IMG/VR virus record: IMGVR_UViG_3300042319_002138
Location: 162,304 to 226,303 of that record
DNA length: 64,000 nucleotides
Reading direction: 5' to 3' (one strand)
Below, piece by piece: positions 28,038 through 44,356 of this stretch (the first letter of the stretch is position 1; every line of letters starts with the position of its first letter). The notes beneath the pieces were generated by a model. That model ran no database searches and was not told where the DNA came from. It saw nothing but the letters and a program-made list of their open reading frames with translations. A program made the position numbers and the translations under genes.

Positions 28038-28040
28038 TAT

Positions 28041-28191: not shown

Positions 28192-28200
28192 CAATAATAA

Positions 28201-30562: not shown

Positions 30563-30705
30563 TTTTTTTTTATTTATAAATATAATATTAAGACGTATTT
30601 AAATGTAAATAGAAGGAACACTTATCCCAAAAGGTGGGATTGGAGAATATCTAGTACTTTTGGCTTATTTTTTAAATTTACGATTAAATAGAATATTTAT
30701 ATTAT

Positions 30706-31455
30706 ATGAAGTTAATTAGAGAATTCGATGATTTTAGTTGGACTAATATGGGTACACTTAATCCGTTTATGAGTGATGACCCACTTGTTGTTGTATGGTT
30801 AGATAAATCTGCCACTGAATCAGAGATTAATAAATTATATGATATGCTTTTGGAAGTTAATATAGAAATTAGTACATCAAAGTCAGATTTTGTAAAAAGT
30901 TTATTAACATATTCTAGAAATGGGTCTGCATATGTTAAATCTTACATAGCTCAAAATGGTGAAAAAAGAGCTGGGTATGGTGATACAAAAGCTTTATTTG
31001 ATGAACATAAATATTGGAAAGCTATGGAAGATTTAGACGGTAAACCATATATAGAATATAAATTAGGTGATATCTTTAAAGATAGATTAAATGAGTCTGA
31101 AGAGTTAAATTGGATTATAGAAAGTAACCCATCATTTAGAAACAAGATAATTATTTTTGAACCACTGATTATTGAGGATGAGTATAATATTGTTATAGAT
31201 GGTTTATTAGAATTTGATGAGGACCTTTATACCTATAGTGGTAATTTAGAAGAATTAAGACCTTTCACTTCTTATGATTATTTACACCATTTAGTTATAG
31301 GTTTAAATGGTGTAGTAGCTTATGGTGGGGCCAATGAACATAACAACGAAGACTGGGGTGGTTTTATGGATAACGTAGAAAATTACATAGGTAATTATTA
31401 TAAAAATTTTAACAACCCAGAAGTTATTGATGGAAGAAAATATTTTAATCTTTAA
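30706..31455 (+). CDS. Acidic two-module protein (MKLIREFDDFSW; internal RLNESEELNWI)
   Basis: ATATTTATA upstream; shared motif family. Confidence 0.6.
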   Translation: MKLIREFDDFSWTNMGTLNPFMSDDPLVVVWLDKSATESEINKLYDMLLEVNIEISTSKSDFVKSLLTYSRNGSAYVKSYIAQNGEKRAGYGDTKALFDEHKYWKAMEDLDGKPYIEYKLGDIFKDRLNESEELNWIIESNPSFRNKIIIFEPLIIEDEYNIVIDGLLEFDEDLYTYSGNLEELRPFTSYDYLHHLVIGLNGVVAYGGANEHNNEDWGGFMDNVENYIGNYYKNFNNPEVIDGRKYFNL

Positions 31456-31479
31456 TAACTCCAATTAATACTTATTGAT

Positions 31480-33405
31480 ATGGATAAAAATTTTTACATT
31501 AATAAATTAAATAAAACTTTAATTTCACAAACACATAACCCTCTTTTTTATAAAGGGGATATAGTAGAAGGTTCTAAAATTCTAACTAAAGAAGTTGTAG
31601 ACTCAATTAATGTTGATAGATGTTCTATATGGTTATACAACAAAAATAAAACATCTATTGTTTGCCAACAATTATATGTTAAATCTGAAAATATGTGGTA
31701 TGATGGTTTAGAAATCTTTGAAAAGGATTTTGGACCGTATTTCGAAGAATTAATAAAGAACCCAATAATAATAGCTAATGATGCTGAAAAACATCCAGCA
31801 ACATCTTGTTTTACTGATGGTTATTTAAAACCACTGGGTATTAAATCTATGTTAGATGTACCTATCATTTATTTTGGGGAAACTATTGGTGTTATATGTA
31901 TTGAAAGTTTTACATTACGTGAATGGGATTCTTTTGAGGTTGATTTTACTCAATTATTATCTTCTTTATACACTTTTGCTTATTCAATAAAAGAAACAAA
32001 CAATTTAAATAAAAAAATAGAAGAAACAGAAAAATTTATTGACGTATCGACAATTATATCTACTGCTGATAAAAGAGGTAAAATTACATATGTTAATAAA
32101 AAATTTGAGGATGTTTCTGGGTGGTCTTTGGATGAGGTAGTTGGTAAAGACCATGTTATTGTTAATTCGGGATTACAACCTGATGGATATTGGGGTAAAA
32201 TGTATGAAACGGTAATGAAAGGTGATGTATGGAATGACGTTGTTACCAATAAAGGAAAATCAGGAGAATTATATTACGTTGATACTTTTATTAGAGCAAT
32301 TTTTGATACCGATGGTAAATTGGATGGATTTGCTTCAATAAGACAAGATGTTACAGAACTTAAAAAAAAGGAAGTTGAAATTCGCAATAGAATGAACGCG
32401 ATAAATAAATCTAACGCAGTTATTGAGTTTGATTTAGAAGGAAACATCATTTTTGCTAATAATTTGTTTTTAGAAACTATGGGATATTCTTTACAGGATG
32501 AAGTAGTTGGAAAACACCATAGAATTTTTATAGATGAGGAATACTCAAAAAGTGAAGAATACTCTCTTTTTTGGGAAAAATTAAATGAAGGGGTGTTATT
32601 TACCGGTGAAATTACTAGAATTAAAAAAGACGGTTCTTTAGTGTATCTACAAGCAACATACAATCCAGTTATCGGTTTAGATGGTAAGGTTTATCGTGTT
32701 ATGAAAATCGCGACAGATATCACCAATTCCTACGAACAAAAGAAAGAAATTGAAAAGAAAAACACTTACCTAGAACATGCGGCTAAAATATTAAGACACG
32801 ATATGCATTCAGGTATTAATACTTATATGCCAAGAGGATTAAGTTCTTTAGAAAGAAGATTAACCCCCGAAGATATTAAAACTTTAAAAATTGAGGCCCC
32901 AATTAAAATGATTAAAGAGGGTTTAAAACATTCCCAAAAAGTATATAAAGGGGTTTACGAATTTACAAATCTTGTAAAGAAAGATGTTGTTTTAAATAAA
33001 ACGGAATGTAATTTAAAAGATATACTTGAGGATTATTTATCAGCGACAGCATATAGTAGTCAAGTTATTATTGATGAGTTACCAACGATAGAAGTTAATG
33101 AACCATTATTCTGTACCGCAGTCGATAATTTAATTCGTAATGGGTTAAAGTATAATGATAGTAATACAAAATTTGTTAAAATATATATGGAAGATGGTAA
33201 TCTAATTATACAAGACAACGGTAGAGGGATTACACAAAAAGATTTTATTCATTTATCCCAACCATATACCAGAAAAGAAGGCCAAAAAGAATCTGGAACT
33301 GGTCTAGGGCTTAATATATGTGTAGCTATTTTAGAAGAACATAAATTTAATATTTCGTGTGAGAAAAATGACATAGGGACAAAAATGAAAATTGAACTAA
33401 AATGA
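31480..33405 (+). CDS. Cytoplasmic sensor histidine kinase (GAF-PAS-PAS-HisKA-HATPase)
   Basis: GAF 'MLDVPII..GVICIE'; two PAS/PAC; H box 'RHDMHSG'; N box 'DNLIRNGLKY'; 'DNGRG'; 'GTGLGL'. Confidence 0.93.
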   Translation: MDKNFYINKLNKTLISQTHNPLFYKGDIVEGSKILTKEVVDSINVDRCSIWLYNKNKTSIVCQQLYVKSENMWYDGLEIFEKDFGPYFEELIKNPIIIANDAEKHPATSCFTDGYLKPLGIKSMLDVPIIYFGETIGVICIESFTLREWDSFEVDFTQLLSSLYTFAYSIKETNNLNKKIEETEKFIDVSTIISTADKRGKITYVNKKFEDVSGWSLDEVVGKDHVIVNSGLQPDGYWGKMYETVMKGDVWNDVVTNKGKSGELYYVDTFIRAIFDTDGKLDGFASIRQDVTELKKKEVEIRNRMNAINKSNAVIEFDLEGNIIFANNLFLETMGYSLQDEVVGKHHRIFIDEEYSKSEEYSLFWEKLNEGVLFTGEITRIKKDGSLVYLQATYNPVIGLDGKVYRVMKIATDITNSYEQKKEIEKKNTYLEHAAKILRHDMHSGINTYMPRGLSSLERRLTPEDIKTLKIEAPIKMIKEGLKHSQKVYKGVYEFTNLVKKDVVLNKTECNLKDILEDYLSATAYSSQVIIDELPTIEVNEPLFCTAVDNLIRNGLKYNDSNTKFVKIYMEDGNLIIQDNGRGITQKDFIHLSQPYTRKEGQKESGTGLGLNICVAILEEHKFNISCEKNDIGTKMKIELK

Positions 33406-34016
33406 TAAAACTAAAAAATTTATTAACCATATTTTTCATAAGTATGGTAAGTATAGTGTATTCACAACCAACCTACCCTATCCAGACACAATTAAAAGGT
33501 GATTCTGTGGTTATTCTTACAAAAAAACAATCTGATGATATTAATTCACTAATTGAGAATCAAAAAATTAGAATACAAAAATATAAAACAGAAATAAAAT
33601 TAGTTAATGATACTAACACGTTATTAAATAACGATATTAAAATAAAAGATAGTGTTATTAACCAATTGGATAGTTTGTTAACCGTCCAAAACAATTATTA
33701 CGATAGTTTAATTTCTAAAATAGATACGTTAGAGAATTGGATTTTATCGTCGTCGATAGATAATGGGTACCTATATTATTCTTGGCAAGACTCAACAGTT
33801 AAAGTTATTGATTTAAGTTTGTATATGTTAGTATCGCATAGAGGAAGTGGTAATTATAGTTTAATTACAAGAGGTGATGTTACTAATATATATTATTGGA
33901 AACAAATAAATCTACTTAAAGAAGAAAGTCCTGAGATTGGTTGGGAATTAAATATATCCCCAAAATATAAACCAAGAATAGTATTATTCCCATATAAATT
34001 AACCCCAAAATTATGA
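33402..34016 (+). CDS. Secreted coiled-coil protein in two-component locus
   Basis: Signal peptide ending YSQ. Confidence 0.6.
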   Translation: MIKLKNLLTIFFISMVSIVYSQPTYPIQTQLKGDSVVILTKKQSDDINSLIENQKIRIQKYKTEIKLVNDTNTLLNNDIKIKDSVINQLDSLLTVQNNYYDSLISKIDTLENWILSSSIDNGYLYYSWQDSTVKVIDLSLYMLVSHRGSGNYSLITRGDVTNIYYWKQINLLKEESPEIGWELNISPKYKPRIVLFPYKLTPKL

Positions 34017-35416
34017 TAAAAAATATTTTAATAACAATAATGTTTTTGGGTTTTTTTACTTCTTTAAATGTAAATTCACAGACTGATAATAACCCCAAAA
34101 AAACAGAGATTGAACCTACATGTCCTAGTGATAGTCGTATAACTAGTTTAATTAAAAAATTAAATTACGAACCAAATAAAAAATTAACTAAATACCAATC
34201 AAGCTTATGTCAAGAAATTGGTATCTCTTTTTATAATAAAGGTATGTATGATGAGTCAGATTGGTATTTAGATAAGGTTAGTACCTATATTGATGTTGTT
34301 GATTTAAAACCTGAAAAAGTTTTTGACACACCTAAAGAAGAACCCGTACAAGAGTTAAGTGACTCAGAATTATCTAGTATTAAAGCCGACCAAAAATTTT
34401 TAGATGACCTACCAAAATCATACGATAATTTATCTAAAAAAGATATAAAAAAAATTGCTGATGAGATAGAGTCAAAACTCCAAAAACTATTAAAAGAAAA
34501 AAAAGAATTATTAAAAAATAAAGCTAGTCAAGAAGTTATCAGTTCTAAAACAAGTACTATACAAATATTAGGTAAAGAAAAAAATATCATTAATCTTAGT
34601 GTTAAAAATGATGATTTAGTTACCGATAAAAAAACCTTAAAAAAATATTTATGGTGGTCCACAATTGTTCTTTCTGTTTTGGTTTTAGGTATTATTGTTT
34701 TATTACAAAGAAAAACAATTAAAGTCCAAGACATAGAAATCGAAAACCAATTAAAAGACATTAACAAGAAAAACACTTACCTTGAATATGCGGCTAGAAT
34801 AATTAGACACGACATGCATTCAGGTATTAACACCTATATACCAAGAGGGTTATCGTCATTAGAAAAAAGAATTTCAATTGAGGAAATGAATAACTTAAAA
34901 ATTACACCCTCAATTAAAATGATAAAAGATGGTTTGGCACACACACAAAAAGTATATAAAAGTGTTTATGAGTTTACAAACCTTGTGAAAAATACTGTAG
35001 TTTTAGATAGAAATATGGTTGATATAAAAGAATCTTTATTAAAATACTTAACAAATACATCATATAAAAATCAGGTAGAAATTAGTGAATTAGTTACACT
35101 AAATGTAAATGAAACTCTTTTTTGGAACGCTATTGATAATTTAATTAAAAATGGGTTAAAATATAATAGTAGTGAAAATAAAGAAATTAAAATTTACATG
35201 GATAATAATGATTTAATTATTGAAGATAATGGTGTTGGATTTTCACAAAAAGAGTTCGAAAGAACAACAGGTGAATATTTAAATAAAAAGAGTAATTCCG
35301 AAGTTGGTTTAGGTTTAGGTATAACCAAAACAATTTTAGAAGAACATGGTTTTAGTATGATGTGTGAAAAAATTAACACTGGTACAAAAATAACGGTTAA
35401 ATTAAATAAAAATTAA
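34013..35416 (+). CDS. Membrane sensor histidine kinase
   Basis: Signal peptide, periplasmic domain, one TM, H box 'RHDMHSG', 'DNLIKNGLKY', 'DNGVG', 'GLGLG'. Confidence 0.9.
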   Translation: MIKNILITIMFLGFFTSLNVNSQTDNNPKKTEIEPTCPSDSRITSLIKKLNYEPNKKLTKYQSSLCQEIGISFYNKGMYDESDWYLDKVSTYIDVVDLKPEKVFDTPKEEPVQELSDSELSSIKADQKFLDDLPKSYDNLSKKDIKKIADEIESKLQKLLKEKKELLKNKASQEVISSKTSTIQILGKEKNIINLSVKNDDLVTDKKTLKKYLWWSTIVLSVLVLGIIVLLQRKTIKVQDIEIENQLKDINKKNTYLEYAARIIRHDMHSGINTYIPRGLSSLEKRISIEEMNNLKITPSIKMIKDGLAHTQKVYKSVYEFTNLVKNTVVLDRNMVDIKESLLKYLTNTSYKNQVEISELVTLNVNETLFWNAIDNLIKNGLKYNSSENKEIKIYMDNNDLIIEDNGVGFSQKEFERTTGEYLNKKSNSEVGLGLGITKTILEEHGFSMMCEKINTGTKITVKLNKN

Positions 35417-35423
35417 AAAAAAA

Positions 35424-35861
35424 ATGATTGATTCTATATTATTAGTTGATGACGAGGATTTATTCCATTTAGTATTTGAGGATGCGTGTTCCTTATTAGA
35501 TATAAGTTTGTCTTTAAACGCGTTAAACAGTTCTGACGAAGCAGCAAAACTATTCCAAAAATGGTTCCAAAGTGGTAATGAAGACAATAAACCAGAATGT
35601 GTTTTTGTTGACTTAAATATTATTGGTAGTTCTTTTGATGGTATTGAGTTAATTAGAAAAATAAACTTTGAATATGGTAACCATGTGGTTATTGGTATAA
35701 TTTCATCGTCTAATGAACCAGATGAACAAGCTAAAGCATTACAAGCTGGAGCACAGTTTTGGATTATTAAATCAGACGATATAGAACCAAGACTAGAAGA
35801 ATTTAGAAAAGATTACGAAGGTTATAAAAATAGAACCGCACCATTTAAAGTTTACAAATGA
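35424..35861 (+). CDS. Stand-alone response regulator (receiver domain)
   Basis: 'ILLVDD', phosphoacceptor 'FVDLN', 'ISSS', 'WIIKS'. Confidence 0.92.
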   Translation: MIDSILLVDDEDLFHLVFEDACSLLDISLSLNALNSSDEAAKLFQKWFQSGNEDNKPECVFVDLNIIGSSFDGIELIRKINFEYGNHVVIGIISSSNEPDEQAKALQAGAQFWIIKSDDIEPRLEEFRKDYEGYKNRTAPFKVYK

Positions 35862-36535
35862 TTAAAATAGAAAGTTTTACTAAAAAAAGTTTAATAGATT
35901 TATATAAAGAAAAAAATGTAGGTCTTGAGGGTAATATCACAAAATTAATTGATTCTGAGGATGATGAAGAATTTAAAGATTATTTAAAAGATTGTGAATT
36001 AAGAGATACCGAAAAAAGGAAGAAGCGTCTTGATATGACAAAAAAAATACAAAAACAAAATCAAGAACTATCTAATTTAAATAATGAAAACGAAAGAATT
36101 CTAGAAGAATTACAGGAAACTTTAAAAGACGTTGAGGATTCCAAGTTGACGTATGAGGTTCAGAATAAGGAACTTAATGAGTGGAAAGAAGATAACCTTA
36201 GATTAACTGAAGAGTTAAAAAATGAAATGGCTAAATCTGAAAAGGCTAGAATAGATGCGGAAAAAGCTAAAGATATGGCCGAAAACGATTTAGATTTATT
36301 ACAAAAAAGAACTCAAAATGAACTAATCTCCACCATTGTTAGAGTTGCTCTATGGATAATCATGGGTGTGGGTTTTGTAACAACTGGTGTTTATGTCTTC
36401 ACATTATTAATGGGCAAAGACACTCAAGTTATTAGTGCTACTTGGTCTAACATATTTGGTATTCTATTAACAAATGCATTTTCTATTGTAGGTACCATTA
36501 TGGGTATAAAATACGCAACAGAAAAAAAAGAATAA
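35858..36535 (+). CDS. Coiled-coil protein with two C-terminal TM helices
   Basis: Long E/K heptads, then two hydrophobic segments. Confidence 0.65.
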   Translation: MIKIESFTKKSLIDLYKEKNVGLEGNITKLIDSEDDEEFKDYLKDCELRDTEKRKKRLDMTKKIQKQNQELSNLNNENERILEELQETLKDVEDSKLTYEVQNKELNEWKEDNLRLTEELKNEMAKSEKARIDAEKAKDMAENDLDLLQKRTQNELISTIVRVALWIIMGVGFVTTGVYVFTLLMGKDTQVISATWSNIFGILLTNAFSIVGTIMGIKYATEKKE

Positions 36536-36541
36536 AAATAG

Positions 36542-36572
36542 TTTGACAATTAATAAACTTTTACTATATTTG
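36542..36572 (+). promoter_or_regulatory. Bacteroidota-type promoter for leader 2 / tRNA cluster 2
   Basis: TTTGACA and TATATTTG; flanking sequence closely resembles the leader-1 promoter. Confidence 0.75.
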
Positions 36573-36614
36573 TACCATATTTAATTAATACGAACAAAAA
36601 TTTTTATAAATTCA

Positions 36615-36716
36615 ATGAAAACAACAATGACATACAAACAAGGGACCGTTAAAACGGTTGATGGGAAAGTGGATTCACTTTTCTACGGACATGGGTTGTC
36701 ATACTGGAGTTGTTGA
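36615..36716 (+). CDS. Leader peptide 2 (33 aa, MKTTMTYKQGTVKTVDGKVDSLFYGHGLSYWSC)
   Basis: Short ORF between promoter and terminator; codons mirror tRNA cluster 2. Confidence 0.8.
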   Translation: MKTTMTYKQGTVKTVDGKVDSLFYGHGLSYWSC

Positions 36717-36741
36717 TTTGAATTTACTCTATATATAGAAT

Positions 36742-36773
36742 AACCCTGGGTCCAAAAGATTCAGGGTTTTTTG
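36742..36773 (+). terminator. Attenuator terminator of tRNA cluster 2
   Basis: AACCCTGGGTC-caaaa-GATTCAGGGTT plus T-tract. Confidence 0.8.
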
Positions 36774-36799
36774 TTCTTTGATATATCGGTTTAAAAAAA

Positions 36800-36889
36800 G
36801 GAAGGGTGGCAGAGTTGGTCTATTGCATCTGATTTGAAATCAGAAGTACCTTTGAAAGGGTACCGTGGGTTCGAATCCTACCTCTTCCT
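36800..36889 (+). tRNA. tRNA-Ser(UGA)
   Basis: Loop TTTGAAA, long variable arm. Confidence 0.93.
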
Positions 36890-36896
36890 CATAAAT

Positions 36897-36968
36897 GGTC
36901 CATTGGTGTAGTGGCCAACATACATCCCTGTCACGGATGTGCCGCGAGTTCGATTCTCGCATGGACCG
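36897..36968 (+). tRNA. tRNA-Asp(GUC)
   Basis: Loop CTGTCAC. Confidence 0.92.
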
Positions 36969-37009
36969 CAACTAACCATAAATCCTAGTAACCCCTAGGT
37001 TGGTTAAAC

Positions 37010-37082
37010 AGTTCCTTAGCTCAGCTGGGAGAGCAACTCGCTTACATCGAGAAGGTCACAGGTTCGAACCCTGTAGGAACTA
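37010..37082 (+). tRNA. tRNA-Val(UAC)
   Basis: Loop CTTACAT. Confidence 0.92.
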
Positions 37083-37091
37083 CAATAAATT

Positions 37092-37166
37092 GCCTCATTA
37101 GCTCAGCTGGCTTAGAGCGTCTGATTTGTACTCAGAAGGCCGTGGGTTCGATTCCTACATGAGGCT
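37092..37166 (+). tRNA. tRNA-Thr(UGU)
   Basis: Loop TTTGTAC. Confidence 0.92.
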
Positions 37167-37228
37167 CAATTAATAACAAACAAATAAAAACGTCAGATTA
37201 TGGAAAGTGGCAAGTATGGCAAACACAA

Positions 37229-37300
37229 TCCCTCGTAGCAAACAAGTGTAGGCAACGGACTTTTAATCCGTGGGGCTGGGAGCGTTACCCGGCGGGGGAA
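37229..37300 (+). tRNA. tRNA-Lys(UUU), non-canonical T loop
   Basis: ACGGA-CTTTTAA-TCCGT; T arm CTGGG-AGCGTTA-CCCGG; 7-bp acceptor. Confidence 0.75.
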
Positions 37301-37308
37301 CAAAACAC

Positions 37309-37378
37309 ACCGAGGCTTAGTGGTAAAGAACTATCTCTCATAAGGATGGTCAAGTGGGTTCAATTCCCATACTCGGTA
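37309..37378 (+). tRNA. tRNA with CAU anticodon (Met or Ile2), short D arm
   Basis: Loop CTCATAA; T arm GTGGG-TTCAATT-CCCAT. Confidence 0.7.
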
Positions 37379-37386
37379 CATTATAT

Positions 37387-37457
37387 TGCGGCAAGGTGTA
37401 ATTGGTTGCATGGGAGTCTCATAAACTTCAGGGGTGGTTCGAGTCCACAGCACGCTA
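37387..37457 (+). tRNA. tRNA with CAU anticodon, imperfect acceptor stem
   Basis: GGAGT-CTCATAA-ACTTC; bulged acceptor. Confidence 0.6.
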
Positions 37458-37462
37458 CTAAT

Positions 37463-37537
37463 GGGGATATAGTTTAATTGGCTAAAACATCTGATTTGCA
37501 TTCAGAAGATGTCTCGGTTCGATTCCGAGTATCTCCA
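37463..37537 (+). tRNA. tRNA-Ala(UGC)
   Basis: Loop TTTGCAT; G3-U70. Confidence 0.92.
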
Positions 37538-37570
37538 CAATAAAATAACAAAAGAAAAAGAAAGAAATTA

Positions 37571-37690
37571 ATGAAGATAGTGTTAACAGGTAAATTAGAA
37601 TCACATAGAGAAATTTTTAGAGGAGAAAGAGAAAAAAATAAATTGATTAAAAGAATAAAAAAATTTATTTTTAAAAGAAAAAACGCTTAA
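37571..37690 (+). CDS. Small basic ORF inside tRNA cluster 2 (39 aa)
   Basis: ATG 37571 to TAA 37690; not in the ORF track. Confidence 0.35.
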   Translation: MKIVLTGKLESHREIFRGEREKNKLIKRIKKFIFKRKNA

Positions 37691-37734
37691 TAGAACAAAG
37701 TACAAGTTCAGGGTGGGGTGCGGTTCCCACAAAT

Positions 37735-37811
37735 GCGGGTGTAGCTCAATTGACTAGAGTACTAGCCTTCCAAGCTGGGAGTTGCGGGTTTGAATCCCGC
37801 CACCCGCTCCA
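37735..37811 (+). tRNA. tRNA-Gly(UCC)
   Basis: Loop CTTCCAA; CCA. Confidence 0.92.
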
Positions 37812-37812
37812 T

Positions 37813-37895
37813 ACGTCAGTGGCGGAATTGGTAGACGCGTTGGTTTTAGGAACCAATATCGTTAAGATGTGGGGGTTCGACTCCCCCCTGACGTA
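37813..37895 (+). tRNA. tRNA-Leu(UAG)
   Basis: Loop TTTAGGA, long variable arm. Confidence 0.93.
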
Positions 37896-37938
37896 CTTTT
37901 ATTTTGCCAATTAAACAATAACCCTTATATTTGTAATT

Positions 37939-38634
37939 ATGAAAAAATTAACCTTTATTAGTGACACACACACCAAACACGAGAAACTTAACGGTTTTCT
38001 TCCTGGTGGTGATATGTTAATCTGTGCTGGTGATATCACTAGTAGAGGTTATAAAACTGAAATTGAAAATTTTCTTAAGTGGTTTGATAAAATTGATAAC
38101 TATGACCACAAAATTTTCATAGCAGGTAATCACGACTTTGGTTTCCAAGACCAACCTAATGAAACTAAAGGTTTGTTAACTGGTTATAAAACAGTTGAAT
38201 ATTTACAAGACGAACTTTTATTGGTTGGTGATGAGGATTATGACGATATGGTTAAAGTTTGGGGTACTCCTTGGCAACCTGAATTTCATAATTGGGCATT
38301 TAACTTACCAAGAGGACAAGCTTTAAAAGAGAAGTGGGATATGATAACAGTTGGTACTGACATTCTTATCACTCACGGACCACCATTTGGCAAATTGGAT
38401 TACGTAAAATACCCAAATCAAAATGTTGGTTGTGAAGAACTAATGAAACGAGTTGAAGTAATCAAACCAAAAATTCACGTATTTGGACACATCCACGAAG
38501 GTTATGGTTATGTGTTTGATGGAAATACTCACTACATTAACGCAGCTGTGTTAAATGGACGATATGAGTTCCGCAATAAACCTGTGAATGTTTTATGGGA
38601 TAAAAACACAAATCATTTGGAATTTGTTGATTAA
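37939..38634 (+). CDS. Calcineurin-like metallophosphoesterase
   Basis: 'SDTH', 'AGD', 'AGNHD', 'THGPP', 'FGHIH'. Confidence 0.92.
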   Translation: MKKLTFISDTHTKHEKLNGFLPGGDMLICAGDITSRGYKTEIENFLKWFDKIDNYDHKIFIAGNHDFGFQDQPNETKGLLTGYKTVEYLQDELLLVGDEDYDDMVKVWGTPWQPEFHNWAFNLPRGQALKEKWDMITVGTDILITHGPPFGKLDYVKYPNQNVGCEELMKRVEVIKPKIHVFGHIHEGYGYVFDGNTHYINAAVLNGRYEFRNKPVNVLWDKNTNHLEFVD

Positions 38635-38651
38635 TAGGTTATCTTTGTGGT

Positions 38652-39113
38652 ATGAATAAAGTAAAAATATATTTGGATGACATAAGAACTCCTAATGACA
38701 AAGATTGGTTGGTTGTTAGGAGTTTTTATGAATTTGTAGACTTAATAAATAAAGTTGGTTTGAATAACATCGAATTAATTTCATTAGACCATGACTTGGG
38801 TGATACTGCTATGAATGAGTATTATAACAATGTTTCACCTAACTACAAATTAGATTATGAGAACATAGAAGAAAAAACTGGTTACGACGCGGTTAAATGG
38901 TTAGTTAATTTGTTTTATTCTTTGAATGAACATAGAATCAACATGAGTAGGTCTGAGAAAAAAAGGGATAAAAATTTTTATTTCCCTAAAGTTGTGGTTC
39001 ATTCAGCTAACCCAATAGGTTCAGCTAATATCATGGGTTATATCAATAACTTTTTAATGAATGAAGGTAAATCACAAGATTGTATAAGAGTTAAAATTGA
39101 GTATTATGTATGA
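38652..39113 (+). CDS. Cyclic-phosphate processing receiver-like domain protein
   Basis: 'IYLDDIRTP', 'ISLDHDLG', 'TGYD', 'VHSANPIG'. Confidence 0.8.
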   Translation: MNKVKIYLDDIRTPNDKDWLVVRSFYEFVDLINKVGLNNIELISLDHDLGDTAMNEYYNNVSPNYKLDYENIEEKTGYDAVKWLVNLFYSLNEHRINMSRSEKKRDKNFYFPKVVVHSANPIGSANIMGYINNFLMNEGKSQDCIRVKIEYYV

Positions 39114-39233
39114 TACTGAGGGACCAGAATTAACAAAACAACAAAAAAAAGATATTAAAAAAGTTGTTGACCGTTATCTTAGAATTAGATTCAAGAGAAG
39201 GGTTAGATTATTAATAGGATTAAAATTAAAATA

Positions 39234-39623
39234 ATGAAAGTTTCATTTGATTTTGATGGTACGCTTTCTCTTAAGAGTGTCCAAGAATACGCCAAAGATT
39301 TGGTGAGTAGGGGTTTAGATGTCCACATTGTTACTAGTAGACATAGTGATAAAGCAGCCAAAGAAGCTGGTTGGTGGTGGATATTGGACCAAAATAAAAA
39401 TCTATTTAATGTTGCTCAAGAATGTGGTATTGATGAAAAAAATATTACCTTCACAAACGGAAGGGACAAGATAGAATATTTGAAAGGTAAAGACTTCAAA
39501 TTTCATTTGGACGATGACGAAATTGAATTAATGTTAATTTTTGAATCTGATGAAAAGTGTATGCCTTTGAACGTTGGTCATAGTGATTGGCGTGATAATT
39601 GTGAAACAGAAATTAAAAGTTAA
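39234..39623 (+). CDS. HAD-superfamily phosphatase
   Basis: 'SFDFDGTL', 'VTSR', 'K...HLDDD'. Confidence 0.8.
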   Translation: MKVSFDFDGTLSLKSVQEYAKDLVSRGLDVHIVTSRHSDKAAKEAGWWWILDQNKNLFNVAQECGIDEKNITFTNGRDKIEYLKGKDFKFHLDDDEIELMLIFESDEKCMPLNVGHSDWRDNCETEIKS

Positions 39624-39624
39624 T

Positions 39625-40200
39625 ATGAAAGTAATTTTTCTTGATAATGATGGTGTAATCTGTTTGGCAGATAATTGGGGTAGTAGAATGAAAAAATTTA
39701 AAAAATATCATTCTAAAAATCCTGATGTTAAATTTGATGATAGACCAATTGATTGTAGATTAGATAACTTTGATGTGAAAGCAATTAAAGTTTTAAATAC
39801 CATCCTTGAACAAACAGGAGCTGAGATTGTGGTATCTTCTGATTGGAGATACCAAGCTTCTCTTGAGGAACTTGGGGACTACTATCAAAGTCAAGGAATT
39901 ATCAAAAGACCTATTGGGGTTACTGACATGTTTAAAGATATCTACCCAAGAGAATGGCAAAGATTGAGAAACTACGCCAAACTTGAGTATGAGAGACAAG
40001 CAGAAATCAAACATTGGTTATCGCAACATCCTGAAGTAACTCATTGGGTTGCAGTTGATGATTTAGATATGTCAGAAAAGTTTGGGTCAATCTCTGGTAA
40101 TCCTAATAGTGGGTTAACTAACTTTGTCCTAACACCAAAATCAACACAGGGAATTAAACAATCAGGGATTAAAGAAAAAATCTTAAAATTTTTAATGTAA
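39625..40200 (+). CDS. HAD domain protein (RNA-repair Swiss-army-knife type)
   Basis: 'IFLDNDGV', 'IVVSSDWR', 'WVAVDD'. Confidence 0.8.
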   Translation: MKVIFLDNDGVICLADNWGSRMKKFKKYHSKNPDVKFDDRPIDCRLDNFDVKAIKVLNTILEQTGAEIVVSSDWRYQASLEELGDYYQSQGIIKRPIGVTDMFKDIYPREWQRLRNYAKLEYERQAEIKHWLSQHPEVTHWVAVDDLDMSEKFGSISGNPNSGLTNFVLTPKSTQGIKQSGIKEKILKFLM

Positions 40201-40201
40201 T

Positions 40202-40489
40202 ATGGCTAGATTAAGTAGAGAAGAAAAAATGAACAAAGCTGTTGTCGACATTATTAATGAAATGTTTAAGATAGCAGGTCATGAGGTAACTTATGACGAT
40301 ATCAAGGACCGTAAGGATAATTGGTACGCCCAATGGACCATGACTGAAGCTCAATACGACGAATGGAAAAAATGGGGTAAAAAATATCTCCAAAAGAACC
40401 TTCGTATGTATGCAAAACAAGCAGAAAAAGAAATGTTATGGGTAGGTATGATGTGGGGATTAAAATTTTCTGACCTACAACTTGGTTAA
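40202..40489 (+). CDS. Hypothetical protein
   Basis: ORF. Confidence 0.6.
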   Translation: MARLSREEKMNKAVVDIINEMFKIAGHEVTYDDIKDRKDNWYAQWTMTEAQYDEWKKWGKKYLQKNLRMYAKQAEKEMLWVGMMWGLKFSDLQLG

Positions 40490-40542
40490 TTAGTGTTTTT
40501 ATTTCTTTTATAGGATATTTATAATTAACAAATTAATTAGTT

Positions 40543-41163
40543 ATGAGTAGAAATATTAATAGAAGTACTTCAGCTATTGTTGATGAAATTCTTAGAAAGA
40601 GTAGAATTCGTGAACAAGAAGAGGAAGAAGAAAACAAAGATACTGAAGAAAAGAAAACTGAAACAAAAGGTGAACCTGAACTTTATAAATTAAGTAGTAA
40701 GGTTATAGAAATTCTTAATAATAGAATTAAAGATGAGTATACAGCTCATTACTATTATAGAGCGGCTACTAACTGGTGTCAGGATATGAATTATAAGAAA
40801 GCTGCTGAGTTCTTTAAAAATGAGGCTGACGATGAGTTAGAACACGCTCAAAAACTACAAGAGTATATGACAGGTTTTAATATTTTACCTGAAATAGAAA
40901 AAACAGAAACAAAACACACTTTTGGTAATTTACTTGATGTTGTTTATGGAGCTTACACTATGGAGTTGGCTTTAATGAAAGATTATAATAAAGATTCTCA
41001 GGATGTTTTTTCTGATGATATCACAACATTTGATTTTTTAACTGAATTTAGAGAAATCCAAAAAGGAGCTGTAATTGAATACAATGATTTGATTAACGCA
41101 TCCAATTTGATTGATAAAGGGGATAAATTCCAAATACTTTATTTTGAACAAACTTATTTTTAA
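40543..41163 (+). CDS. Ferritin-like protein with N-terminal extension
   Basis: 'LNNRIKDEYTAHYYY', 'EADDELEHAQK', 'EIQKGAVIE'. Confidence 0.82.
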   Translation: MSRNINRSTSAIVDEILRKSRIREQEEEEENKDTEEKKTETKGEPELYKLSSKVIEILNNRIKDEYTAHYYYRAATNWCQDMNYKKAAEFFKNEADDELEHAQKLQEYMTGFNILPEIEKTETKHTFGNLLDVVYGAYTMELALMKDYNKDSQDVFSDDITTFDFLTEFREIQKGAVIEYNDLINASNLIDKGDKFQILYFEQTYF

Positions 41164-41258
41164 GTAATTGTATCATCGAATAAGGACCCCTTTCAGAAAT
41201 GTTAGGGGTTTTTTGTTTTTATATTGTTTAATTAAAAAAATAACTATATATTTGTGTT

Positions 41259-41450
41259 ATGGAATATTTTAAATTGTTTTTAATGTGGTTAGCATTTATT
41301 GTTATCACAACTTATTACGGGGATTACCTTGTAAGTAGAGAAGTAAACGGGTTCATCCAACTTTTAGGTTTCGTTGGAATGGTTGCACTCGTAGGATTAG
41401 TAGGAAACGAAACCATCAAAGTTTTAAATAATAAAAAAGAAGAAAAATGA
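41259..41450 (+). CDS. Small two-TM protein
   Basis: Hydrophobic helices; TATATTTG promoter. Confidence 0.6.
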   Translation: MEYFKLFLMWLAFIVITTYYGDYLVSREVNGFIQLLGFVGMVALVGLVGNETIKVLNNKKEEK

Positions 41451-42397
41451 TTAGTACAGTAATTTTTGTAGTATGTTTAATTGCGGTTATCCTTACCGTT
41501 CTAAAAACAAGAGGTAGTATGTTTACGGTAACCCAAAACCATTACGGTCATGATAGTAAACGATTCAACCCATCTTGGCTCATTAAACCGATTGGTATTT
41601 TTGTTGTAGGTATCGTTATTTCAATGACCCAACCGTTTGCGATTGAAAAAGTTGACGCAGGTCACAAAGGATTAAAGATTAATTTGGTCGGAGACCAACG
41701 AGGTGTATCAAGTTATCAGTATAAAACTGGTTGGGTACTTTATAACACTTGGACAGAACAAGTATTGGAGTTTCCAACATACCAACAACACATTGAGTAT
41801 GAAGACCAAGGTGTAATCCTTAAAGGTGGATTCTCAGCAACCATTAAACCAACATTTAACTATTCTCTACGTGAGGATGCTATTGGTGATATGTTTGTTA
41901 ATTTAAGATTATCTATTAGTGAAATTGAAAAGGGTTGGTTGAAAAACGCTATTATTGGGGCAGTAAATGACGTAGCTAACACATGGGAGGTAGATAGTAT
42001 TTTTAATCACCGACAAGCATTTGAATCAGCAATTGTTGCAGAATGTAATGTTAGGTTATCTAAATGGTTTAACGTATCTCAGTTGAGAACTAATATCACA
42101 CCACCTGAGGCATTACAAGAGTCAATTATCGCTAAAACAAAGGCTATCCAACAAGCTGAAGCCTCTGAACAACAAGCTATCGCAGCAATCTCTGAAGGAA
42201 GACGTAAAGTAGCCGTAGCAAGAGCGGATTCTGCTGAAACTATAATCAACGCAAATGCGTCAGCACTTTCAATTAAGATTAAACAAACTCAATTAACACC
42301 TATGTATATTGAGTACTTAAAGGCGTCTGCTTGGGATGGAAAATTACCAACAACGGTAGCAGGTGGTTCAGGATTGTTTTTAAACCTAAACAAATAA
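41447..42397 (+). CDS. SPFH/band-7 (prohibitin-like) membrane protein
   Basis: TM anchor, 'VDAGHKG', 'NITPPEALQESIIAK', 'WDGKLP'. Confidence 0.88.
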   Translation: MISTVIFVVCLIAVILTVLKTRGSMFTVTQNHYGHDSKRFNPSWLIKPIGIFVVGIVISMTQPFAIEKVDAGHKGLKINLVGDQRGVSSYQYKTGWVLYNTWTEQVLEFPTYQQHIEYEDQGVILKGGFSATIKPTFNYSLREDAIGDMFVNLRLSISEIEKGWLKNAIIGAVNDVANTWEVDSIFNHRQAFESAIVAECNVRLSKWFNVSQLRTNITPPEALQESIIAKTKAIQQAEASEQQAIAAISEGRRKVAVARADSAETIINANASALSIKIKQTQLTPMYIEYLKASAWDGKLPTTVAGGSGLFLNLNK

Positions 42398-42666
42398 TGA
42401 AGAATGGATTTATTGGGATGGTGACAGTACTTGTTACCATCCTATTTCTAACAGGATGTGGTTGTAGTGACGAAGAATATTACAAACAAAAGTTTAAATT
42501 CAAAAACGGTGATTTTGTAACACATAAGGTTAGTGGTAGTAAAATTTTAATTATTGATACACTAAGATTTAATAATGATTGTGGGTGTGAAGTTGAGTTA
42601 GAATATCTTGGAGTAAACTCAAAAGAACTTAATGAACGTTATAAAGAAATTGAATTAACTAAATAA
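42397..42666 (+). CDS. Putative lipoprotein
   Basis: Lipobox-like 'LFLTGC'. Confidence 0.55.
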   Translation: MKNGFIGMVTVLVTILFLTGCGCSDEEYYKQKFKFKNGDFVTHKVSGSKILIIDTLRFNNDCGCEVELEYLGVNSKELNERYKEIELTK

Positions 42667-42684
42667 ATTTATTATATTTGTGTT

Positions 42685-42924
42685 ATGGAAAAAAGAAGCA
42701 CACATTACGGAGACGTATCAAAATGGATTGAAAAGGTAATTGATTCTTGCGAGACATACCAACAGACATTTACTGTTAAAAAATTGATTAGTAATTTTGC
42801 AAAACAATTAAGAAATAGTGCCCCTGATAAATATTGGAACAGTTATCAATACACAGTTATTTGGCCACTTGAACATAAATTAAAATATAAAAGACAATCA
42901 TTCATAGATAAGATTGGGGAATAA
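42685..42924 (+). CDS. Hypothetical protein
   Basis: TATATTTG promoter upstream. Confidence 0.6.
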   Translation: MEKRSTHYGDVSKWIEKVIDSCETYQQTFTVKKLISNFAKQLRNSAPDKYWNSYQYTVIWPLEHKLKYKRQSFIDKIGE

Positions 42925-43082
42925 TGGGGAATAATGAAATTGAACTAGAAAAAAATTATCTACCCGAATTTATTGACCAATTTGGTGATGGTCCTCTCGG
43001 TGAATTAGACCCTGAAGAATGGGGAGCATTAGAGTTTCTCAGATGGTTAGAAATTAATAATTATAAAATTATAAAAAAATAA
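42924..43082 (+). CDS. Small hypothetical protein (52 aa)
   Basis: ATG overlaps upstream stop; not in the ORF track. Confidence 0.5.
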   Translation: MGNNEIELEKNYLPEFIDQFGDGPLGELDPEEWGALEFLRWLEINNYKIIKK

Positions 43083-43089
43083 TAAATTT

Positions 43090-43236
43090 ATGGAAAATAT
43101 GAAAAGAGTTGATTGGTTTTTGTTAATAATATTTGTAGCAAACTTATGTGCTAGCATTCCATTAGGGTCTTTACCAAACATTCTTGGTTGGTCTTGTGCG
43201 GCAATGGTACAATTAAGAATTTGTTTAACCAAATAA
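43090..43236 (+). CDS. Small membrane protein (48 aa)
   Basis: MENMKRVDWFLLIIFVANLC...; not in the ORF track. Confidence 0.45.
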   Translation: MENMKRVDWFLLIIFVANLCASIPLGSLPNILGWSCAAMVQLRICLTK

Positions 43237-43306
43237 TATAAAAGGTAATAATTGTTAATTACAAAATTTGACTTTTTAAGAAATACAACTATATTTATAA
43301 TATAAA

Positions 43307-43375
43307 ATGAAAAATACGAACATCATATCATTATTAGAAAGATTAGAGAGATTTAGTCTAATGGAGATGGTATGA
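43307..43375 (+). CDS. Leader peptide 3 (22 aa, MKNTNIISLLERLERFSLMEMV)
   Basis: Core codons TTA TTA GAA AGA TTA GAG AGA match downstream Leu(UAA), Glu(UUC) and Arg(UCU). Confidence 0.78.
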   Translation: MKNTNIISLLERLERFSLMEMV

Positions 43376-43396
43376 TTATTTTTTAAATAATATTTT

Positions 43397-43432
43397 AAAA
43401 CCCGTCTCTTAAAACAGATGGGTTTTTTTTTT
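43397..43432 (+). terminator. Attenuator terminator of tRNA cluster 3
   Basis: AAAACCCGTCT-cttaaaac-AGATGGGTTTT plus T-tract. Confidence 0.8.
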
Positions 43433-43486
43433 GAAAAAGATTTGGTAGATTAAAAAAGATTACTTACATTTGTAAGACAAACAACG

Positions 43487-43915
43487 GGGGTAGGAAGTTA
43501 GAGATGAGTGTCCTACTCCCGTGACAAAAAGAAAAAGTTCTTTGACATATTAAAACGGGGACAAGGTAACCACAAACCCACTGGTAATAGGCAGTTCTTG
43601 AGATGGAATGCAAGACAGAACGTAACCCCTACCTTGTTCTTTTTTAAAATATATTGTGGTGGTAAGAAAAGGTGAACTCGTTAAGTTCATAGGCCTGTTG
43701 ACAAAAGATGGTGAAACGAGTGTGGTTGTCGACTACTGCATCACATATATAATACATTGTGTTGTTCCCTTGAGAAAGGAATCAAGAATAAGAGTGGACA
43801 GACTTTAAGCACTACAACACAGAGGACTCAACCTCAAAGAACCTGTACCCTTGAAAAACTCGTTTAAGTAAAGCAGGTTTGCTCCGAAATAAAAGGGTAT
43901 GAGAATAAGGAGTAT
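43487..43915 (+). ncRNA. Tandem array of candidate structured small RNAs
   Basis: Consecutive closed stems: GGGGGTAGGA/TCCTACTCCC, ACAAGGTA/TACCTTGT, TGTGGTG/CATCACA, TGTGTTGT/ACAACACA, and a pseudoknot-like AACCTG/CAGGTT with TACCCTT/AAGGGTA. Confidence 0.55.
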
Positions 43916-43917
43916 TT

Positions 43918-44000
43918 GCTCGGGTGGTGAAATAGGTATACACGTTTGACTTAAAATCAAATTCCCATTGGGAGTGAGGGTTCAAGTCCCTCTCCGAGTA
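43918..44000 (+). tRNA. tRNA-Leu(UAA)
   Basis: TTTGA-CTTAAAA-TCAAA, long variable arm. Confidence 0.92.
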
Positions 44001-44061
44001 CTGTGAAATGAACAACGTCACCACAAGAGTTGTACCTTTATGGTTTTATAATGTGGTATTT

Positions 44062-44133
44062 GGTCCTATCGACTATCGGTTAGGTCGTCAGGTTTTCATC
44101 CTGGAAAGCGGGGTTCGATTCCCCGTAGGACTA
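44062..44133 (+). tRNA. tRNA-Glu(UUC)
   Basis: Loop TTTTCAT. Confidence 0.92.
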
Positions 44134-44216
44134 CAAAAGAGGTGGATACTTTGTACGTAGATAATTTAGTAATATCTTGTCGTAGTGCACCGTTGACGAA
44201 ACCTCTTTTATTTTTG

Positions 44217-44289
44217 GGTCCCGTAGTGTAATGGATTAACATAAGGAGCTTCTACCTCTTTGATTCAGGTTCGAATCCTGACGGGACTA
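44217..44289 (+). tRNA. tRNA-Arg(UCU)
   Basis: Loop CTTCTAC. Confidence 0.9.
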
Positions 44290-44356
44290 CTAAAAAAATA
44301 TTAACTACTAGGTTCGATTTTTAATAAACCTTAAATATTTATTAATAAAATATATT

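Follow-up and report, generated by a model that had tools for sequence, protein, structure and literature searches.

Why phages carry tRNA genes and how they use them is still debated. The locus described here raises the question of whether a phage can adjust the production of its own tRNAs to their supply. The stretch of DNA analysed, hereafter the window, covers 64,000 nucleotides (positions 162,304 to 226,303) of the IMG/VR record IMGVR_UViG_3300042319_002138 from a large phage. At 36542-36781 it holds a promoter, a short open reading frame (ORF), an intrinsic terminator and a boxA-like motif, followed by an array of 8-10 tRNA genes. A first-pass annotation had proposed that this region is a leader-peptide attenuator whose codons match the downstream tRNAs, and that it was derived by duplication and re-coding of one cassette. 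Each part of that proposal is supported by the analyses described below, which point to an attenuator by which the phage probably makes these tRNAs only when they run short.

Anatomy of the cassette and of its paralogues

All the elements lie on the plus strand. The promoter (36542-36572) comprises TTTG/TTGACA at 36542-36548 and the TATATTTG box at 36565-36572, with 19 nt between TTG and TA, and scores 11/12 in a sigma-70-type scan. The same TTG-N19-TAnnTTT(G/A) layout lies upstream of 21 of 24 tRNA-associated cassettes and appears consistent with the -33/-7 promoter type of Bacteroidota. The transcription start is inferred, and the A/U-rich 5' untranslated leader (36573-36614) has no Shine-Dalgarno sequence but contains the block CATATTTAATTAATA that is shared with cassette 1. 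The leader ORF (36615-36716), which starts 42 nt after the -7 box, consists of 33 codons plus a TGA stop and reads MKTTMTYKQGTVKTVDGKVDSLFYGHGLSYWSC; codons 2-22 (36618-36680) are the proposed regulatory codons. The terminator (36742-36774) has arms at 36742-36752 and 36758-36768 forming an 11-bp stem, a CAAAA loop and a T-run. Only 31 nt separate the terminator stem from the first tRNA, with no canonical -33/-7 promoter in that gap.

The array at 36800-37896 encodes Ser-tga, Asp-gtc, Val-tac, Thr-tgt, Lys-ttt, two weak CAT tRNAs (37309-37378 and about 37393-37458), Ala-tgc, Gly-tcc and Leu-tag. A conserved 39-codon ORF lies at 37571-37690, and no terminator-like site lies inside the array. 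The inclusion of Met among the sensed amino acids in the first-pass annotation rests on the two weak CAT calls.

Interestingly, two similar cassettes precede the window's other arrays. Cassette 1 (26365-26596), with its leader ORF at 26424-26534 and its terminator at 26560-26586, precedes tRNAs Ile-gat, Asn, Tyr, Trp, Phe, Pro, Gln, (His), Ser-gct, Ile-tat, Arg-acg and Cys. Cassette 3 (43268-43436), with its leader ORF at 43307-43375 and its terminator at 43397-43426, lies upstream of Leu-taa, Glu-ttc, Arg-tct and Met tRNAs. The promoter and 5' untranslated region of cassette 2, the one under study, are near-duplicates of those of cassette 1. Indeed, TTTGTANCATATTTAATTAATA occurs exactly twice in the window, at 26391 and 36569, against 0.09 expected by chance. 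The terminators of cassettes 1 and 2 share the same loop and are the two best-scoring terminator-like sites in 26000-45900.

The terminator of cassette 2 is immediately followed by the boxA-like motif GTTCTTTGA (GUUCUUUGA as RNA; 36773-36781), 19 nt before the first tRNA, a motif that the first-pass annotation had missed. The motif, GTTCTTTGAnA, matches 10 of 11 positions of the gammaproteobacterial boxA consensus GYTCTTTAANA (PMC5725501). It follows the terminator in most type-2 and type-3 cassettes and also precedes the tmRNA, GOLLD-associated regions and internal tRNAs, recurring in 53 distinct contexts. In a related phage (relatives are designated here by L numbers), cluster C of L014 (Asp, Glu, Leu, Arg, Met) has no cassette and only the boxA-like motif, so that not every array is preceded by a cassette. 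The function of the motif is inferred, and a role as a promoter or processing site is not excluded; if it were a promoter, it would partly bypass the attenuator.

The leader is written almost entirely in the codons of its own array

Of codons 2-22 of the leader, 19 of 21 are read by the tRNAs of the downstream array, against a background of 0.468. None of 200,000 random 21-codon gene windows, and only the leader itself among 218 short ORFs of the window, reach that score. Ala is the only anticodon class of the array without a codon in the leader, as the first-pass annotation had noted, with 8 of 9 classes represented. Leader 1 scores 20/21 with all 12 tRNAs represented, a score that is likewise not reached by any of the random gene windows, while leader 3 scores 10/21, its codons 9-15 (LLERLER) being TTA TTA GAA AGA TTA GAG AGA. 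In contrast, cross-matches are 0-2/21 for leaders 1 and 2 and 6-7/21 for leader 3. The match is confined to the ORF frame, being 0.57 against 0.29 and 0.30 in the other two frames, and it reaches the level of the isoacceptor. In particular, Ser is AGC before Ser-gct and TCA before Ser-tga, Arg is CGT before Arg-acg and AGA before Arg-tct, and Leu is TTA before Leu-taa and CTT before Leu-tag; family-wide, 50 of 58 such codons fit, against 34.7 expected. Most tRNAs are nevertheless represented by only one to three codons, and sensitivity to any single species may thus be low.

A predicted antiterminator with a switch point at codon 23

The first-pass annotation had proposed that GGGTTGT at 36693-36699, starting at codon 27, can pair with ATAACCC at 36740-36746. 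Constrained and truncated folds pair exactly these two stretches, although the 7-bp pairing is only the core of a longer antiterminator. Its 5' strand (region 2, 36687-36703) comprises GGAC at 36687-36690 and GGGTTGTCATA at 36693-36703, and its 3' strand (region 3, 36736-36753) overlaps the 5' arm of the terminator and includes GTCC at 36750-36753. A 10-bp hairpin inside the coding region (36662-36685) is predicted in all constrained folds, with an equivalent in the L034, L036, L011, L020 and L007 homologues, and may act as a pause or spacer hairpin. When folding was performed with a modelled ribosome, the stabilisation from pairing the terminator's 5' arm with upstream RNA was -3 to -11 kcal/mol for the A site on codons 1-22 and fell to about -0.9 from codon 23, exactly where the matched codons stop. 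The same coincidence appears in cassettes 1 and 3 and in most of 24 cassettes from relatives, although L070 and L026 show no clear switch.

Thermodynamic support from single sequences is modest, as the antiterminator is only marginally stronger than in dinucleotide shuffles (P = 0.058, 0.083 and 0.045 for cassettes 1-3), and cross-cassette co-variation was therefore relied upon. Region 2 pairs better with its own terminator arm than with the arms of other cassettes (P<=5e-5), although for cassette 2 alone its own duplex is no better than cross-pairings. In homologues, the 5' strand changes together with the terminator arm, from GGACCUGGG to ACUUAGGG. The antiterminator helix is 90.6% paired in homologues and shows compensatory changes, while all cells of the terminator helix are paired in six homologues, with a GC to AU compensatory change. 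At equilibrium the terminator always wins, so the model needs kinetic control and transcription-translation coupling, neither of which appears to have been demonstrated in Bacteroidota.

Leaders mostly follow re-partitioned arrays in related phages

A megablast search of 30000-42000 against GenBank phages found nothing, and relatives were thus retrieved from IMG/VR through two neighbouring proteins and a promoter pattern. In these phages the arrays are partitioned differently and the leaders mostly follow. The ORF and its distance of 22-32 nt from stop codon to terminator are conserved, whereas the peptides are not conserved as proteins, and the three leader peptides of the window have no match in Pfam or PHROGs. 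As treating all codons except the last 10 as regulatory works for type-1 and type-2 leaders but cuts the matched part of the short type-3 leaders, whole-ORF permutation tests were used. In 24 cassettes, 158 of 172 tRNA-in-array cases have a cognate codon in the leader, against 285 of 476 when the tRNA is absent (Fisher 8e-17), and own-array matches total 330, against 216 +/- 18 when arrays are permuted. Over 18 non-redundant cassettes, z = 7.0 and 0 of 50,000 permutations reach the observed score. Many cassettes are homologous, so the family-wide P values overstate the number of independent events.

Among independent partitions, L084 has MKNYKTYKGCDAKADKGCDY before Lys, Tyr, Asp, Gly, Gly, Ala and Cys tRNAs; L088, L104, L111 and L180 have Thr/Leu/Phe/Gln/Val leaders before exactly those tRNAs; and L103 has a Thr/Tyr/Gln/Gly/Pro leader before those tRNAs, each giving P from 2e-4 to 1e-6. 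Together with the near-identical promoter and 5' untranslated region of cassettes 1 and 2, these relatives support the duplication and re-coding of one cassette. Exceptions exist. Homologues with no codon/anticodon match, which the first-pass annotation had named as evidence against its own reading, are limited to a few arrays that have visibly decayed, as L008, L034 and L007 keep full leaders in front of arrays that have lost most tRNAs. In addition, the L011 type-2 leader has Asp, Ser and Glu codons although those tRNAs lie elsewhere, and the conserved MKNLHI start of type-3 leaders is mostly unmatched (Leu only).

A model for the attenuator and its alternatives

The locus is best explained as a ribosome-mediated transcription attenuator that controls a phage tRNA operon, a reading that is well supported by the sequence, although it rests on no experimental evidence and the host is uncultured or unknown. 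In this model, transcription begins at the promoter and a ribosome starts translating the leader, whose codons 2-22 are almost only those decoded by the tRNA species encoded downstream, namely Lys, Thr, Met, Gly, Val, Asp, Ser-UCA and Leu-CUN. If those charged tRNAs are scarce, the ribosome lags within codons 2-22 and region 2 is free to pair with region 3, which sequesters the 5' arm of the terminator so that RNA polymerase reads on into the array. If they are plentiful, the ribosome reaches codons 23-33 or the stop codon and covers region 2, the terminator forms and transcription stops. The inferred result is a negative feedback in which phage tRNAs are made on demand, the leader acting as a speedometer for the codon set served by its own array. 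Because a delay at any regulatory codon favours read-through, the device roughly implements an OR or sum over up to about 12 tRNA species. The boxA-like element just past the terminator may then load host Nus factors onto polymerases that got through.

The same attenuator could instead sense amino-acid starvation and read the host's nutritional state, as classical thr or ilv leaders do, with the tRNA output being incidental or serving as a timing device. Indeed, the device cannot distinguish too little tRNA from too little charging, its architecture is that of amino-acid attenuators, and the best sub-threshold Rfam match is Thr_leader. However, this appears unlikely, as starvation affects all isoacceptors of an amino acid alike whereas the leaders choose the codon box of the isoacceptor encoded downstream and track which tRNAs are in the array, and making more tRNA does not relieve starvation. 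More doubtful still is the possibility that the ORF is a chance or vestigial frame, or a micropeptide gene, that the hairpin is an ordinary leaky terminator, and that the tRNAs are expressed from other promoters without any codon sensing. The GTTCTTTGA motif, followed by CATATT-like sequence, does resemble the -7 region of the cassette promoters and lies before many RNA genes that have no cassette, and both the weak single-sequence structural support and the leaders kept by decayed arrays could be read in this sense. On the other hand, the codon match is frame-specific and extreme and recurs in at least 18 non-redundant cassettes with different tRNA sets, the ORF length, the spacing from stop codon to terminator and the complementarity of region 2 with the terminator are conserved, and the leader peptides of the window belong to no Pfam or PHROG family. 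In several loci, moreover, the motif lies 5-17 nt downstream of a canonical -7 box and is thus transcribed there, which fits boxA rather than a promoter.

Direct sensing of the codons at the RNA level, as T-box-like specifiers that pair with tRNA anticodons without translation, is very improbable. Although the output genes are tRNAs and the codons are complementary to their anticodons by definition, the codons lie in one frame bounded by an ATG and a stop placed 22-32 nt before the terminator, no T-box-like stem I or discriminator architecture is predicted, and around twenty consecutive specifiers have no precedent. No T-box model matches at the gathering threshold, or at E<=10 in 36500-36800, and no other riboswitch model matches.

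Relation to known attenuators and implications

The layout of promoter-proximal short ORF, regulatory codons, intrinsic terminator and mutually exclusive antiterminator, whose 5' strand is covered by a ribosome that finishes the ORF, is shared with the multivalent leaders of E. coli thrL (Thr and Ile codons) and ilvL/ivbL (Leu, Val and Ile codons), and with the single-amino-acid cases trpL, hisL, leuL and pheL. In those systems too, a stall at the regulatory codons gives read-through, and several amino acids can be sensed by one leader. Here, the output is a tRNA array rather than biosynthetic enzymes, up to 12 tRNA species are each represented by one to six codons instead of runs of one to three amino acids, codon choice is tuned to isoacceptors, and the element is phage-encoded, in a probable Bacteroidota system with -33/-7 promoters and no Shine-Dalgarno sequence. 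It is not a sequence or structure homologue, as Rfam at gathering thresholds finds only tRNAs and the tmRNA in the window, and a permissive scan of the cassette gives at best Thr_leader (RF00506) at 22.8 bits against a gathering score of 55 (E = 0.032 in a 301-nt search). Feedback on the decoding machinery by a leader peptide that senses charged tRNA is found in His-codon leaders upstream of hisS paralogues in bacilli (PMC2965389) and probably in E. coli pheM upstream of pheST, but those systems control aminoacyl-tRNA synthetases for a single amino acid, while here many tRNA genes are themselves controlled at once. T-box riboswitches are also attenuators that monitor specific tRNAs through codon-anticodon recognition and control translation-related genes, but they bind uncharged tRNA directly, without a ribosome, using one specifier codon. 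The boxA-like motif may resemble rrn boxA in lying in the 5' leader of stable-RNA genes, but it is phage-encoded and placed directly after an attenuator.

A broader reading, which is probable, is that a clade of large freshwater phages, probably infecting Bacteroidota, regulates each of its tRNA arrays with its own codon-matched attenuator, a translated self-test that opens transcription of the array only when decoding is slow. Slow decoding could arise when host tRNAs are degraded, cleaved by anticodon nucleases or outstripped by phage codon demand. In this view the cassette is evolvable, having been duplicated and its leader re-written repeatedly as tRNA genes moved between arrays, and is coupled to a boxA-like antitermination signal just after the decision point. 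As no report of leader-peptide or attenuator control of tRNA genes was found within the literature searched, this would be the first case of leader-peptide attenuation acting on tRNA genes and the first known feedback control of virus-encoded tRNA supply.

The codon-match signature is a simple rule for finding such attenuators and for delimiting tRNA transcription units in metagenomic phage genomes, and the cassettes are compact, programmable parts for sensing tRNA or codon supply. Attenuation by leader peptides would be extended from amino-acid metabolism to the decoding machinery itself, to viruses, and to a phylum whose promoters and translation initiation differ from the E. coli model, while the relatives offer a natural evolution experiment in which a regulatory ORF is re-coded to follow changing operon content. 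The reasons proposed for phage tRNAs include codon-usage compensation, replacement of a degraded host pool and evasion of tRNA-cleaving defences. A sensor written in the codons of the array would show that the phage itself monitors the supply of those particular tRNAs, thus turning a correlative question into a testable one.

Genomic context and organization of the proposed attenuator cassette

The window is A+T-rich, with about 30% G+C, and carries 24 confidently called tRNA genes and a tmRNA, plus several weaker or intron-containing tRNA-like genes. No near relative was found among GenBank phages, while many relatives are present among IMG/VR viral contigs of up to 380 kb. A 735-aa protein encoded at 28355-30562 (- strand), which has a PKD-like domain and a C-terminal CHU_C type IX secretion signal, suggests a large phage of a Bacteroidota host, and promoters of the TTG-N19-TAnnTTTG type point in the same direction. 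Two histidine-kinase-like proteins (31480-33405 and 34013-35416) lie between the tRNA arrays of this phage-like genome, one combining GAF, two PAS domains and HATPase_c, and the other having HATPase_c only. The phage-encoded tmRNA (57996-58388) has the tag peptide ANATVGHFVTEGATVAA, and relatives carry tmRNA genes too.

The range 36542-36781 contains, in order, a strong promoter-like site (TTGACA-16-TATATT, 11/12, which also reads as -33 TTTG and -7 TATATTTG), an A/U-rich untranslated stretch, an ORF of 33 codons at 36615-36716, an 11-bp hairpin at 36742-36768 with loop CAAAA followed by a T-run, and the motif GTTCTTTGA at 36773-36781. The first tRNA gene starts at 36800. The first-pass annotation had proposed that this range is a leader-peptide attenuator whose codons fit the downstream tRNA cluster; all the coordinates it gave are correct, the observation is confirmed and its interpretation is supported.

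Several tRNA-like genes are missed by default ARAGORN. They include a His-gtg in cluster 1 (27871-27942), which matches the lone His codon of leader 1, and two CAT tRNAs in cluster 2 (37309-37378 and about 37393-37458), together with a Ser-like tRNA and three apparently intron-containing tRNAs, one with an insert of about 194 nt (45178-45284, 45554-45636, 49805-49914 and 50003-50292). A conserved, very basic 39-codon ORF (MK.VLTGKLESHREIFRG...KKFI.KRKN) sits inside the tRNA array between tRNA-Ala and tRNA-Gly (37571-37690) and is also found in two loci of related IMG/VR phages, hereafter designated by L numbers (L034 11002-11121 and L007 9856-9975); it has no Pfam or PHROG family.

Codon match between leaders and tRNA arrays

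The array behind the cassette encodes Ser-tga, Asp, Val, Thr, Lys, Ala, Gly and Leu-tag, and also holds the two weak tRNAs with anticodon CAT. Of leader codons 2-22, 19 of 21 are read by these tRNAs, the two exceptions being Tyr TAC and Gln CAA. The same tRNAs read 47% of codons in the long ORFs of the window. None of 200,000 random 21-codon gene windows reaches 19, and among the 218 short ORFs of the window only the leader itself does.

Two more cassettes of the same build precede the other arrays. Leader 1 (26424-26534) has 20 of 21 codons read by cluster 1, with every one of its 12 tRNAs represented, including single Trp, Cys, Pro, Phe, Tyr, His, Arg-CGT and Ser-AGC codons. Leader 3 (43307-43375) contains TTA TTA GAA AGA TTA GAG AGA and lies upstream of Leu-taa, Glu-ttc and Arg-tct tRNAs. 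Cross-matches between a leader and the other arrays are 0-2 of 21 for leaders 1 and 2, and 6-7 of 21 for the weaker leader 3. Interestingly, the choice among synonymous codon boxes follows the isoacceptor behind each leader, which argues for sensing of tRNA species rather than amino acids.

The non-regulatory tail of leader 2 (36681-36713, codons 23-33, FYGHGLSYWSC) is written largely in cluster-1 codons, namely Phe, Tyr, His, Trp, Ser-AGT and Cys. A stall there would hold the ribosome on the leader strand of the antiterminator and favour termination, which could give cross-talk between arrays, or the composition of the tail may simply reflect RNA-structure constraints. Cassettes 1 and 2 also share the nucleotide block ACATACA early in the ORF (26433-26444 and 36630-36640), but it is read in different frames, as Asn-Ile-His in one and Thr-Tyr-Lys in the other. 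This may explain the off-cluster Tyr codon in leader 2, and it fits a cassette that was duplicated and then re-framed. Many leaders also share an N-terminal M-(K/R)-x-x-N-(I/L/V)-H pattern.

In the window, tRNA-Leu is separated from attenuator 3 by a 490-nt insert (43427-43917), where relatives have 15-35 nt. The insert holds a second promoter-like site (TACATTTG near 43466), a possible structured RNA of about 95 nt ending in a hairpin and T-run (about 43552-43650) and a possible small ORF of about 57 codons.

Predicted structural switch

The full leader is predicted to fold with the terminator in place, while truncation before the 3' arm of the terminator leads to an antiterminator in which GGAC at 36687-36690 pairs with GUCC at 36750-36753 and 36693-36703 pairs with 36736-36746. 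The GGGTTGT/ATAACCC pairing noted in the first-pass annotation is the core of this structure. To evaluate the effect of translation, the footprint of a ribosome (A site -15 to +13) was masked at each codon in turn, and the free energy gained by letting the 5' arm of the terminator pair with upstream RNA was calculated. The gain is -9 to -11 kcal/mol for codons 1-9, -3 to -7 kcal/mol for codons 10-22 and about -0.9 kcal/mol from codon 23 onward. The predicted switch therefore falls exactly where the matched codons end. The thermodynamic support has limits, as at equilibrium the terminator always wins, so that control must be kinetic, and the antiterminator gain is only marginally larger than in dinucleotide shuffles of the same leader (P = 0.058, 0.083 and 0.045 for cassettes 1-3). 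Moreover, near the stop codon this simple mask lets RNA behind the ribosome pair with RNA ahead of it, which is probably unrealistic. Cassettes 1 and 3 behave the same way as cassette 2, with switches near codons 21 and 14-15, and so do most of 24 cassettes from relatives, while L026 and L070 show no clear switch.

Leader re-coding in related phages

The decisive evidence comes from relatives. Loci around homologues of the two flanking proteins were retrieved, and a simple search for a short ORF ending 15-40 nt before a strong terminator recovered 24 distinct tRNA-associated cassettes. The arrays are partitioned differently in different phages, and the leaders follow. In particular, L084 has MKTINVHMISISNWGRNSHH before His, Asn, Ile, Trp and Arg-acg, and MKNYKTYKGCDAKADKGCDY before Lys, Tyr, Asp, Gly, Gly, Ala and Cys, while L070 adds Thr, Lys and Val codons to a cluster-1-like leader where those tRNAs have joined the array. 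Leaders of type 3, the kind found in cassette 3, read LLGGDLAE(R) where Gly and Asp tRNAs have joined Leu-taa, Glu and Arg-tct, the version in the window being LLERLER. Type-2 leaders in L036, L020 and L011 contain the Ala codons that the leader in the window lacks.

Family-wide, 158 of 172 tRNA-in-array cases have at least one cognate codon in the leader, against 285 of 476 when the tRNA is absent (odds ratio 7.6, Fisher 8e-17), and own-array matches total 330 of 677, against 216 +/- 18 when arrays are permuted among leaders. A scan of IMG/VR with the shared promoter pattern brought in further, unrelated partitions, such as Thr/Leu/Phe/Gln/Val leaders before exactly those tRNAs (L088, L104, L111, L180) and a Thr/Tyr/Gln/Gly/Pro leader before those five (L103). 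Most give P from 2e-4 to 1e-6, although the second cassette of locus L123 gives only P = 0.027, and each has a terminator 20-35 nt after its stop codon. Over 18 non-redundant cassettes, the own-array match is 305 of 537, against 185 +/- 17 (z = 7.0; 0 of 50,000 permutations). Many cassettes are homologous, so these P values overstate the number of independent events, but even so at least five or six clearly different partitions are involved. The match is confined to the ORF frame, 0.57 against 0.29 and 0.30, and it holds at isoacceptor level for Ser, Arg and Leu, 50 of 58 against 34.7 expected.

The correspondence has exceptions. L008 carries an endonuclease-like gene and tRNA remnants inside cluster 1, L034 has a deletion with a tRNA 3' remnant and L007 keeps only Glu and Met tRNAs, yet all three retain near-full leaders, the simplest reading being recent decay of the arrays. 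Endonuclease-like genes are inserted inside tRNA cluster 1 both in the window (27071-27520), where the copy has an HNH match, and in L008 (4129-4815), where a 228-aa Cys-rich ORF accompanies the loss of most tRNAs of the array while the leader stays intact. In addition, the L011 type-2 leader has Asp, Ser and Glu codons although those tRNAs are elsewhere or absent, and not every array has a cassette. Related phages also carry GOLLD RNA genes, a 'freshwater-1' RNA and group I introns close to their tRNA regions (L044 15925-16335, L059 14334-14744, L075 13964-14370; L051 4659-4720; L034 17167-17466, L060 5928-6115). Several tRNA genes in relatives (L037 4512 and 5080; L050/L051 6790; L052 2689 and 5983; L070 6752) are reported by ARAGORN with anticodon loops that are not 7 nt long (shown as '???' with TT, TTAA or GTAT); Rfam supports them as tRNAs, and they could be unusual decoders or suppressors.

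Co-variation of the RNA switch

The leader strand of the antiterminator (region 2) is in effect a copy of the 3' arm of the terminator, and it changes when the terminator changes. Indeed, in the window, L034 and L036 the arm CCCUGGGUCC is matched by GGAC(C)UGGG in the leader, while in L011, L020 and L007 the arm CCCUAAGU is matched by (A/U)CUUAGGG. On an alignment of the six type-2 cassettes, the outer antiterminator helix is 90.6% paired, against 6-53% in slid registers, with CG to UA changes, and the terminator helix is 100% paired, with a GC to AU change, although these counts rest on essentially one evolutionary split. Across all 24 cassettes, the leader pairs better with its own terminator arm than with the arms of other cassettes (sum -258 against -200 +/- 9 kcal/mol; P<=5e-5), whereas for cassette 2 of the window on its own this test is not informative.

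A boxA-like motif downstream of the terminator

The motif GTTCTTTGA at 36773-36781 abuts the T-run of the terminator and belongs to a recurrent motif, (A)AAGTTCTTTGA, often followed by CATATT, that lies just upstream of stable-RNA genes in 53 distinct contexts in loci L001-L084. It follows the terminator in most type-2 and type-3 cassettes, lies between tRNA-Ile and tRNA-Asn in cluster 1 (26689-26700), occurs in the insert downstream of attenuator 3 (43534-43545), and is found 8 nt before an intron-containing tRNA (49983-49994), 6 nt before the tmRNA (57978-57989) and about 450-500 nt upstream of GOLLD RNA genes in relatives. In several loci it lies 5-17 nt after a canonical -7 box, so it is transcribed there, and it matches 10 of 11 positions of the boxA consensus GYTCTTTAANA (PMC5725501). 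It may be a phage boxA-like site that recruits host Nus factors, placed after the decision point of the attenuator. It could instead be a weak promoter or a processing signal, and a promoter would weaken the grip of the attenuator on the array.

Proposed mechanism and comparison with known systems

The proposed element works like the multivalent thr and ilv leaders. In feeding back on the decoding machinery, it resembles the His leaders of hisS paralogues (PMC2965389) and probably pheM-pheST. It is not a member of any Rfam leader family, and it is not a T-box. No report of leader-peptide attenuation of tRNA genes, in phages or in cells, was found within the literature library searched. The proposed mechanism is classical, while the target, the logic and the setting appear to be new within that library.

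All in all, it is likely, although without experimental evidence of any kind, that the cassette is a functional codon-matched attenuator of the tRNA array. Transcription is inferred to start a few nucleotides after the -7 box, the ORF to be translated, and ribosome and polymerase to be coupled in time. A slow ribosome on codons 2-22 would leave region 2 free, so that the antiterminator forms and the array is transcribed, while a fast ribosome would cover region 2, so that the terminator forms. The biological trigger may be loss of host tRNAs during infection, cleavage by anticodon nucleases or heavy phage codon demand. In this model any delay within the regulatory stretch has the same effect, and the leader would therefore integrate decoding speed over the whole codon set served by its array, with the output tRNAs feeding back negatively on their own transcription.
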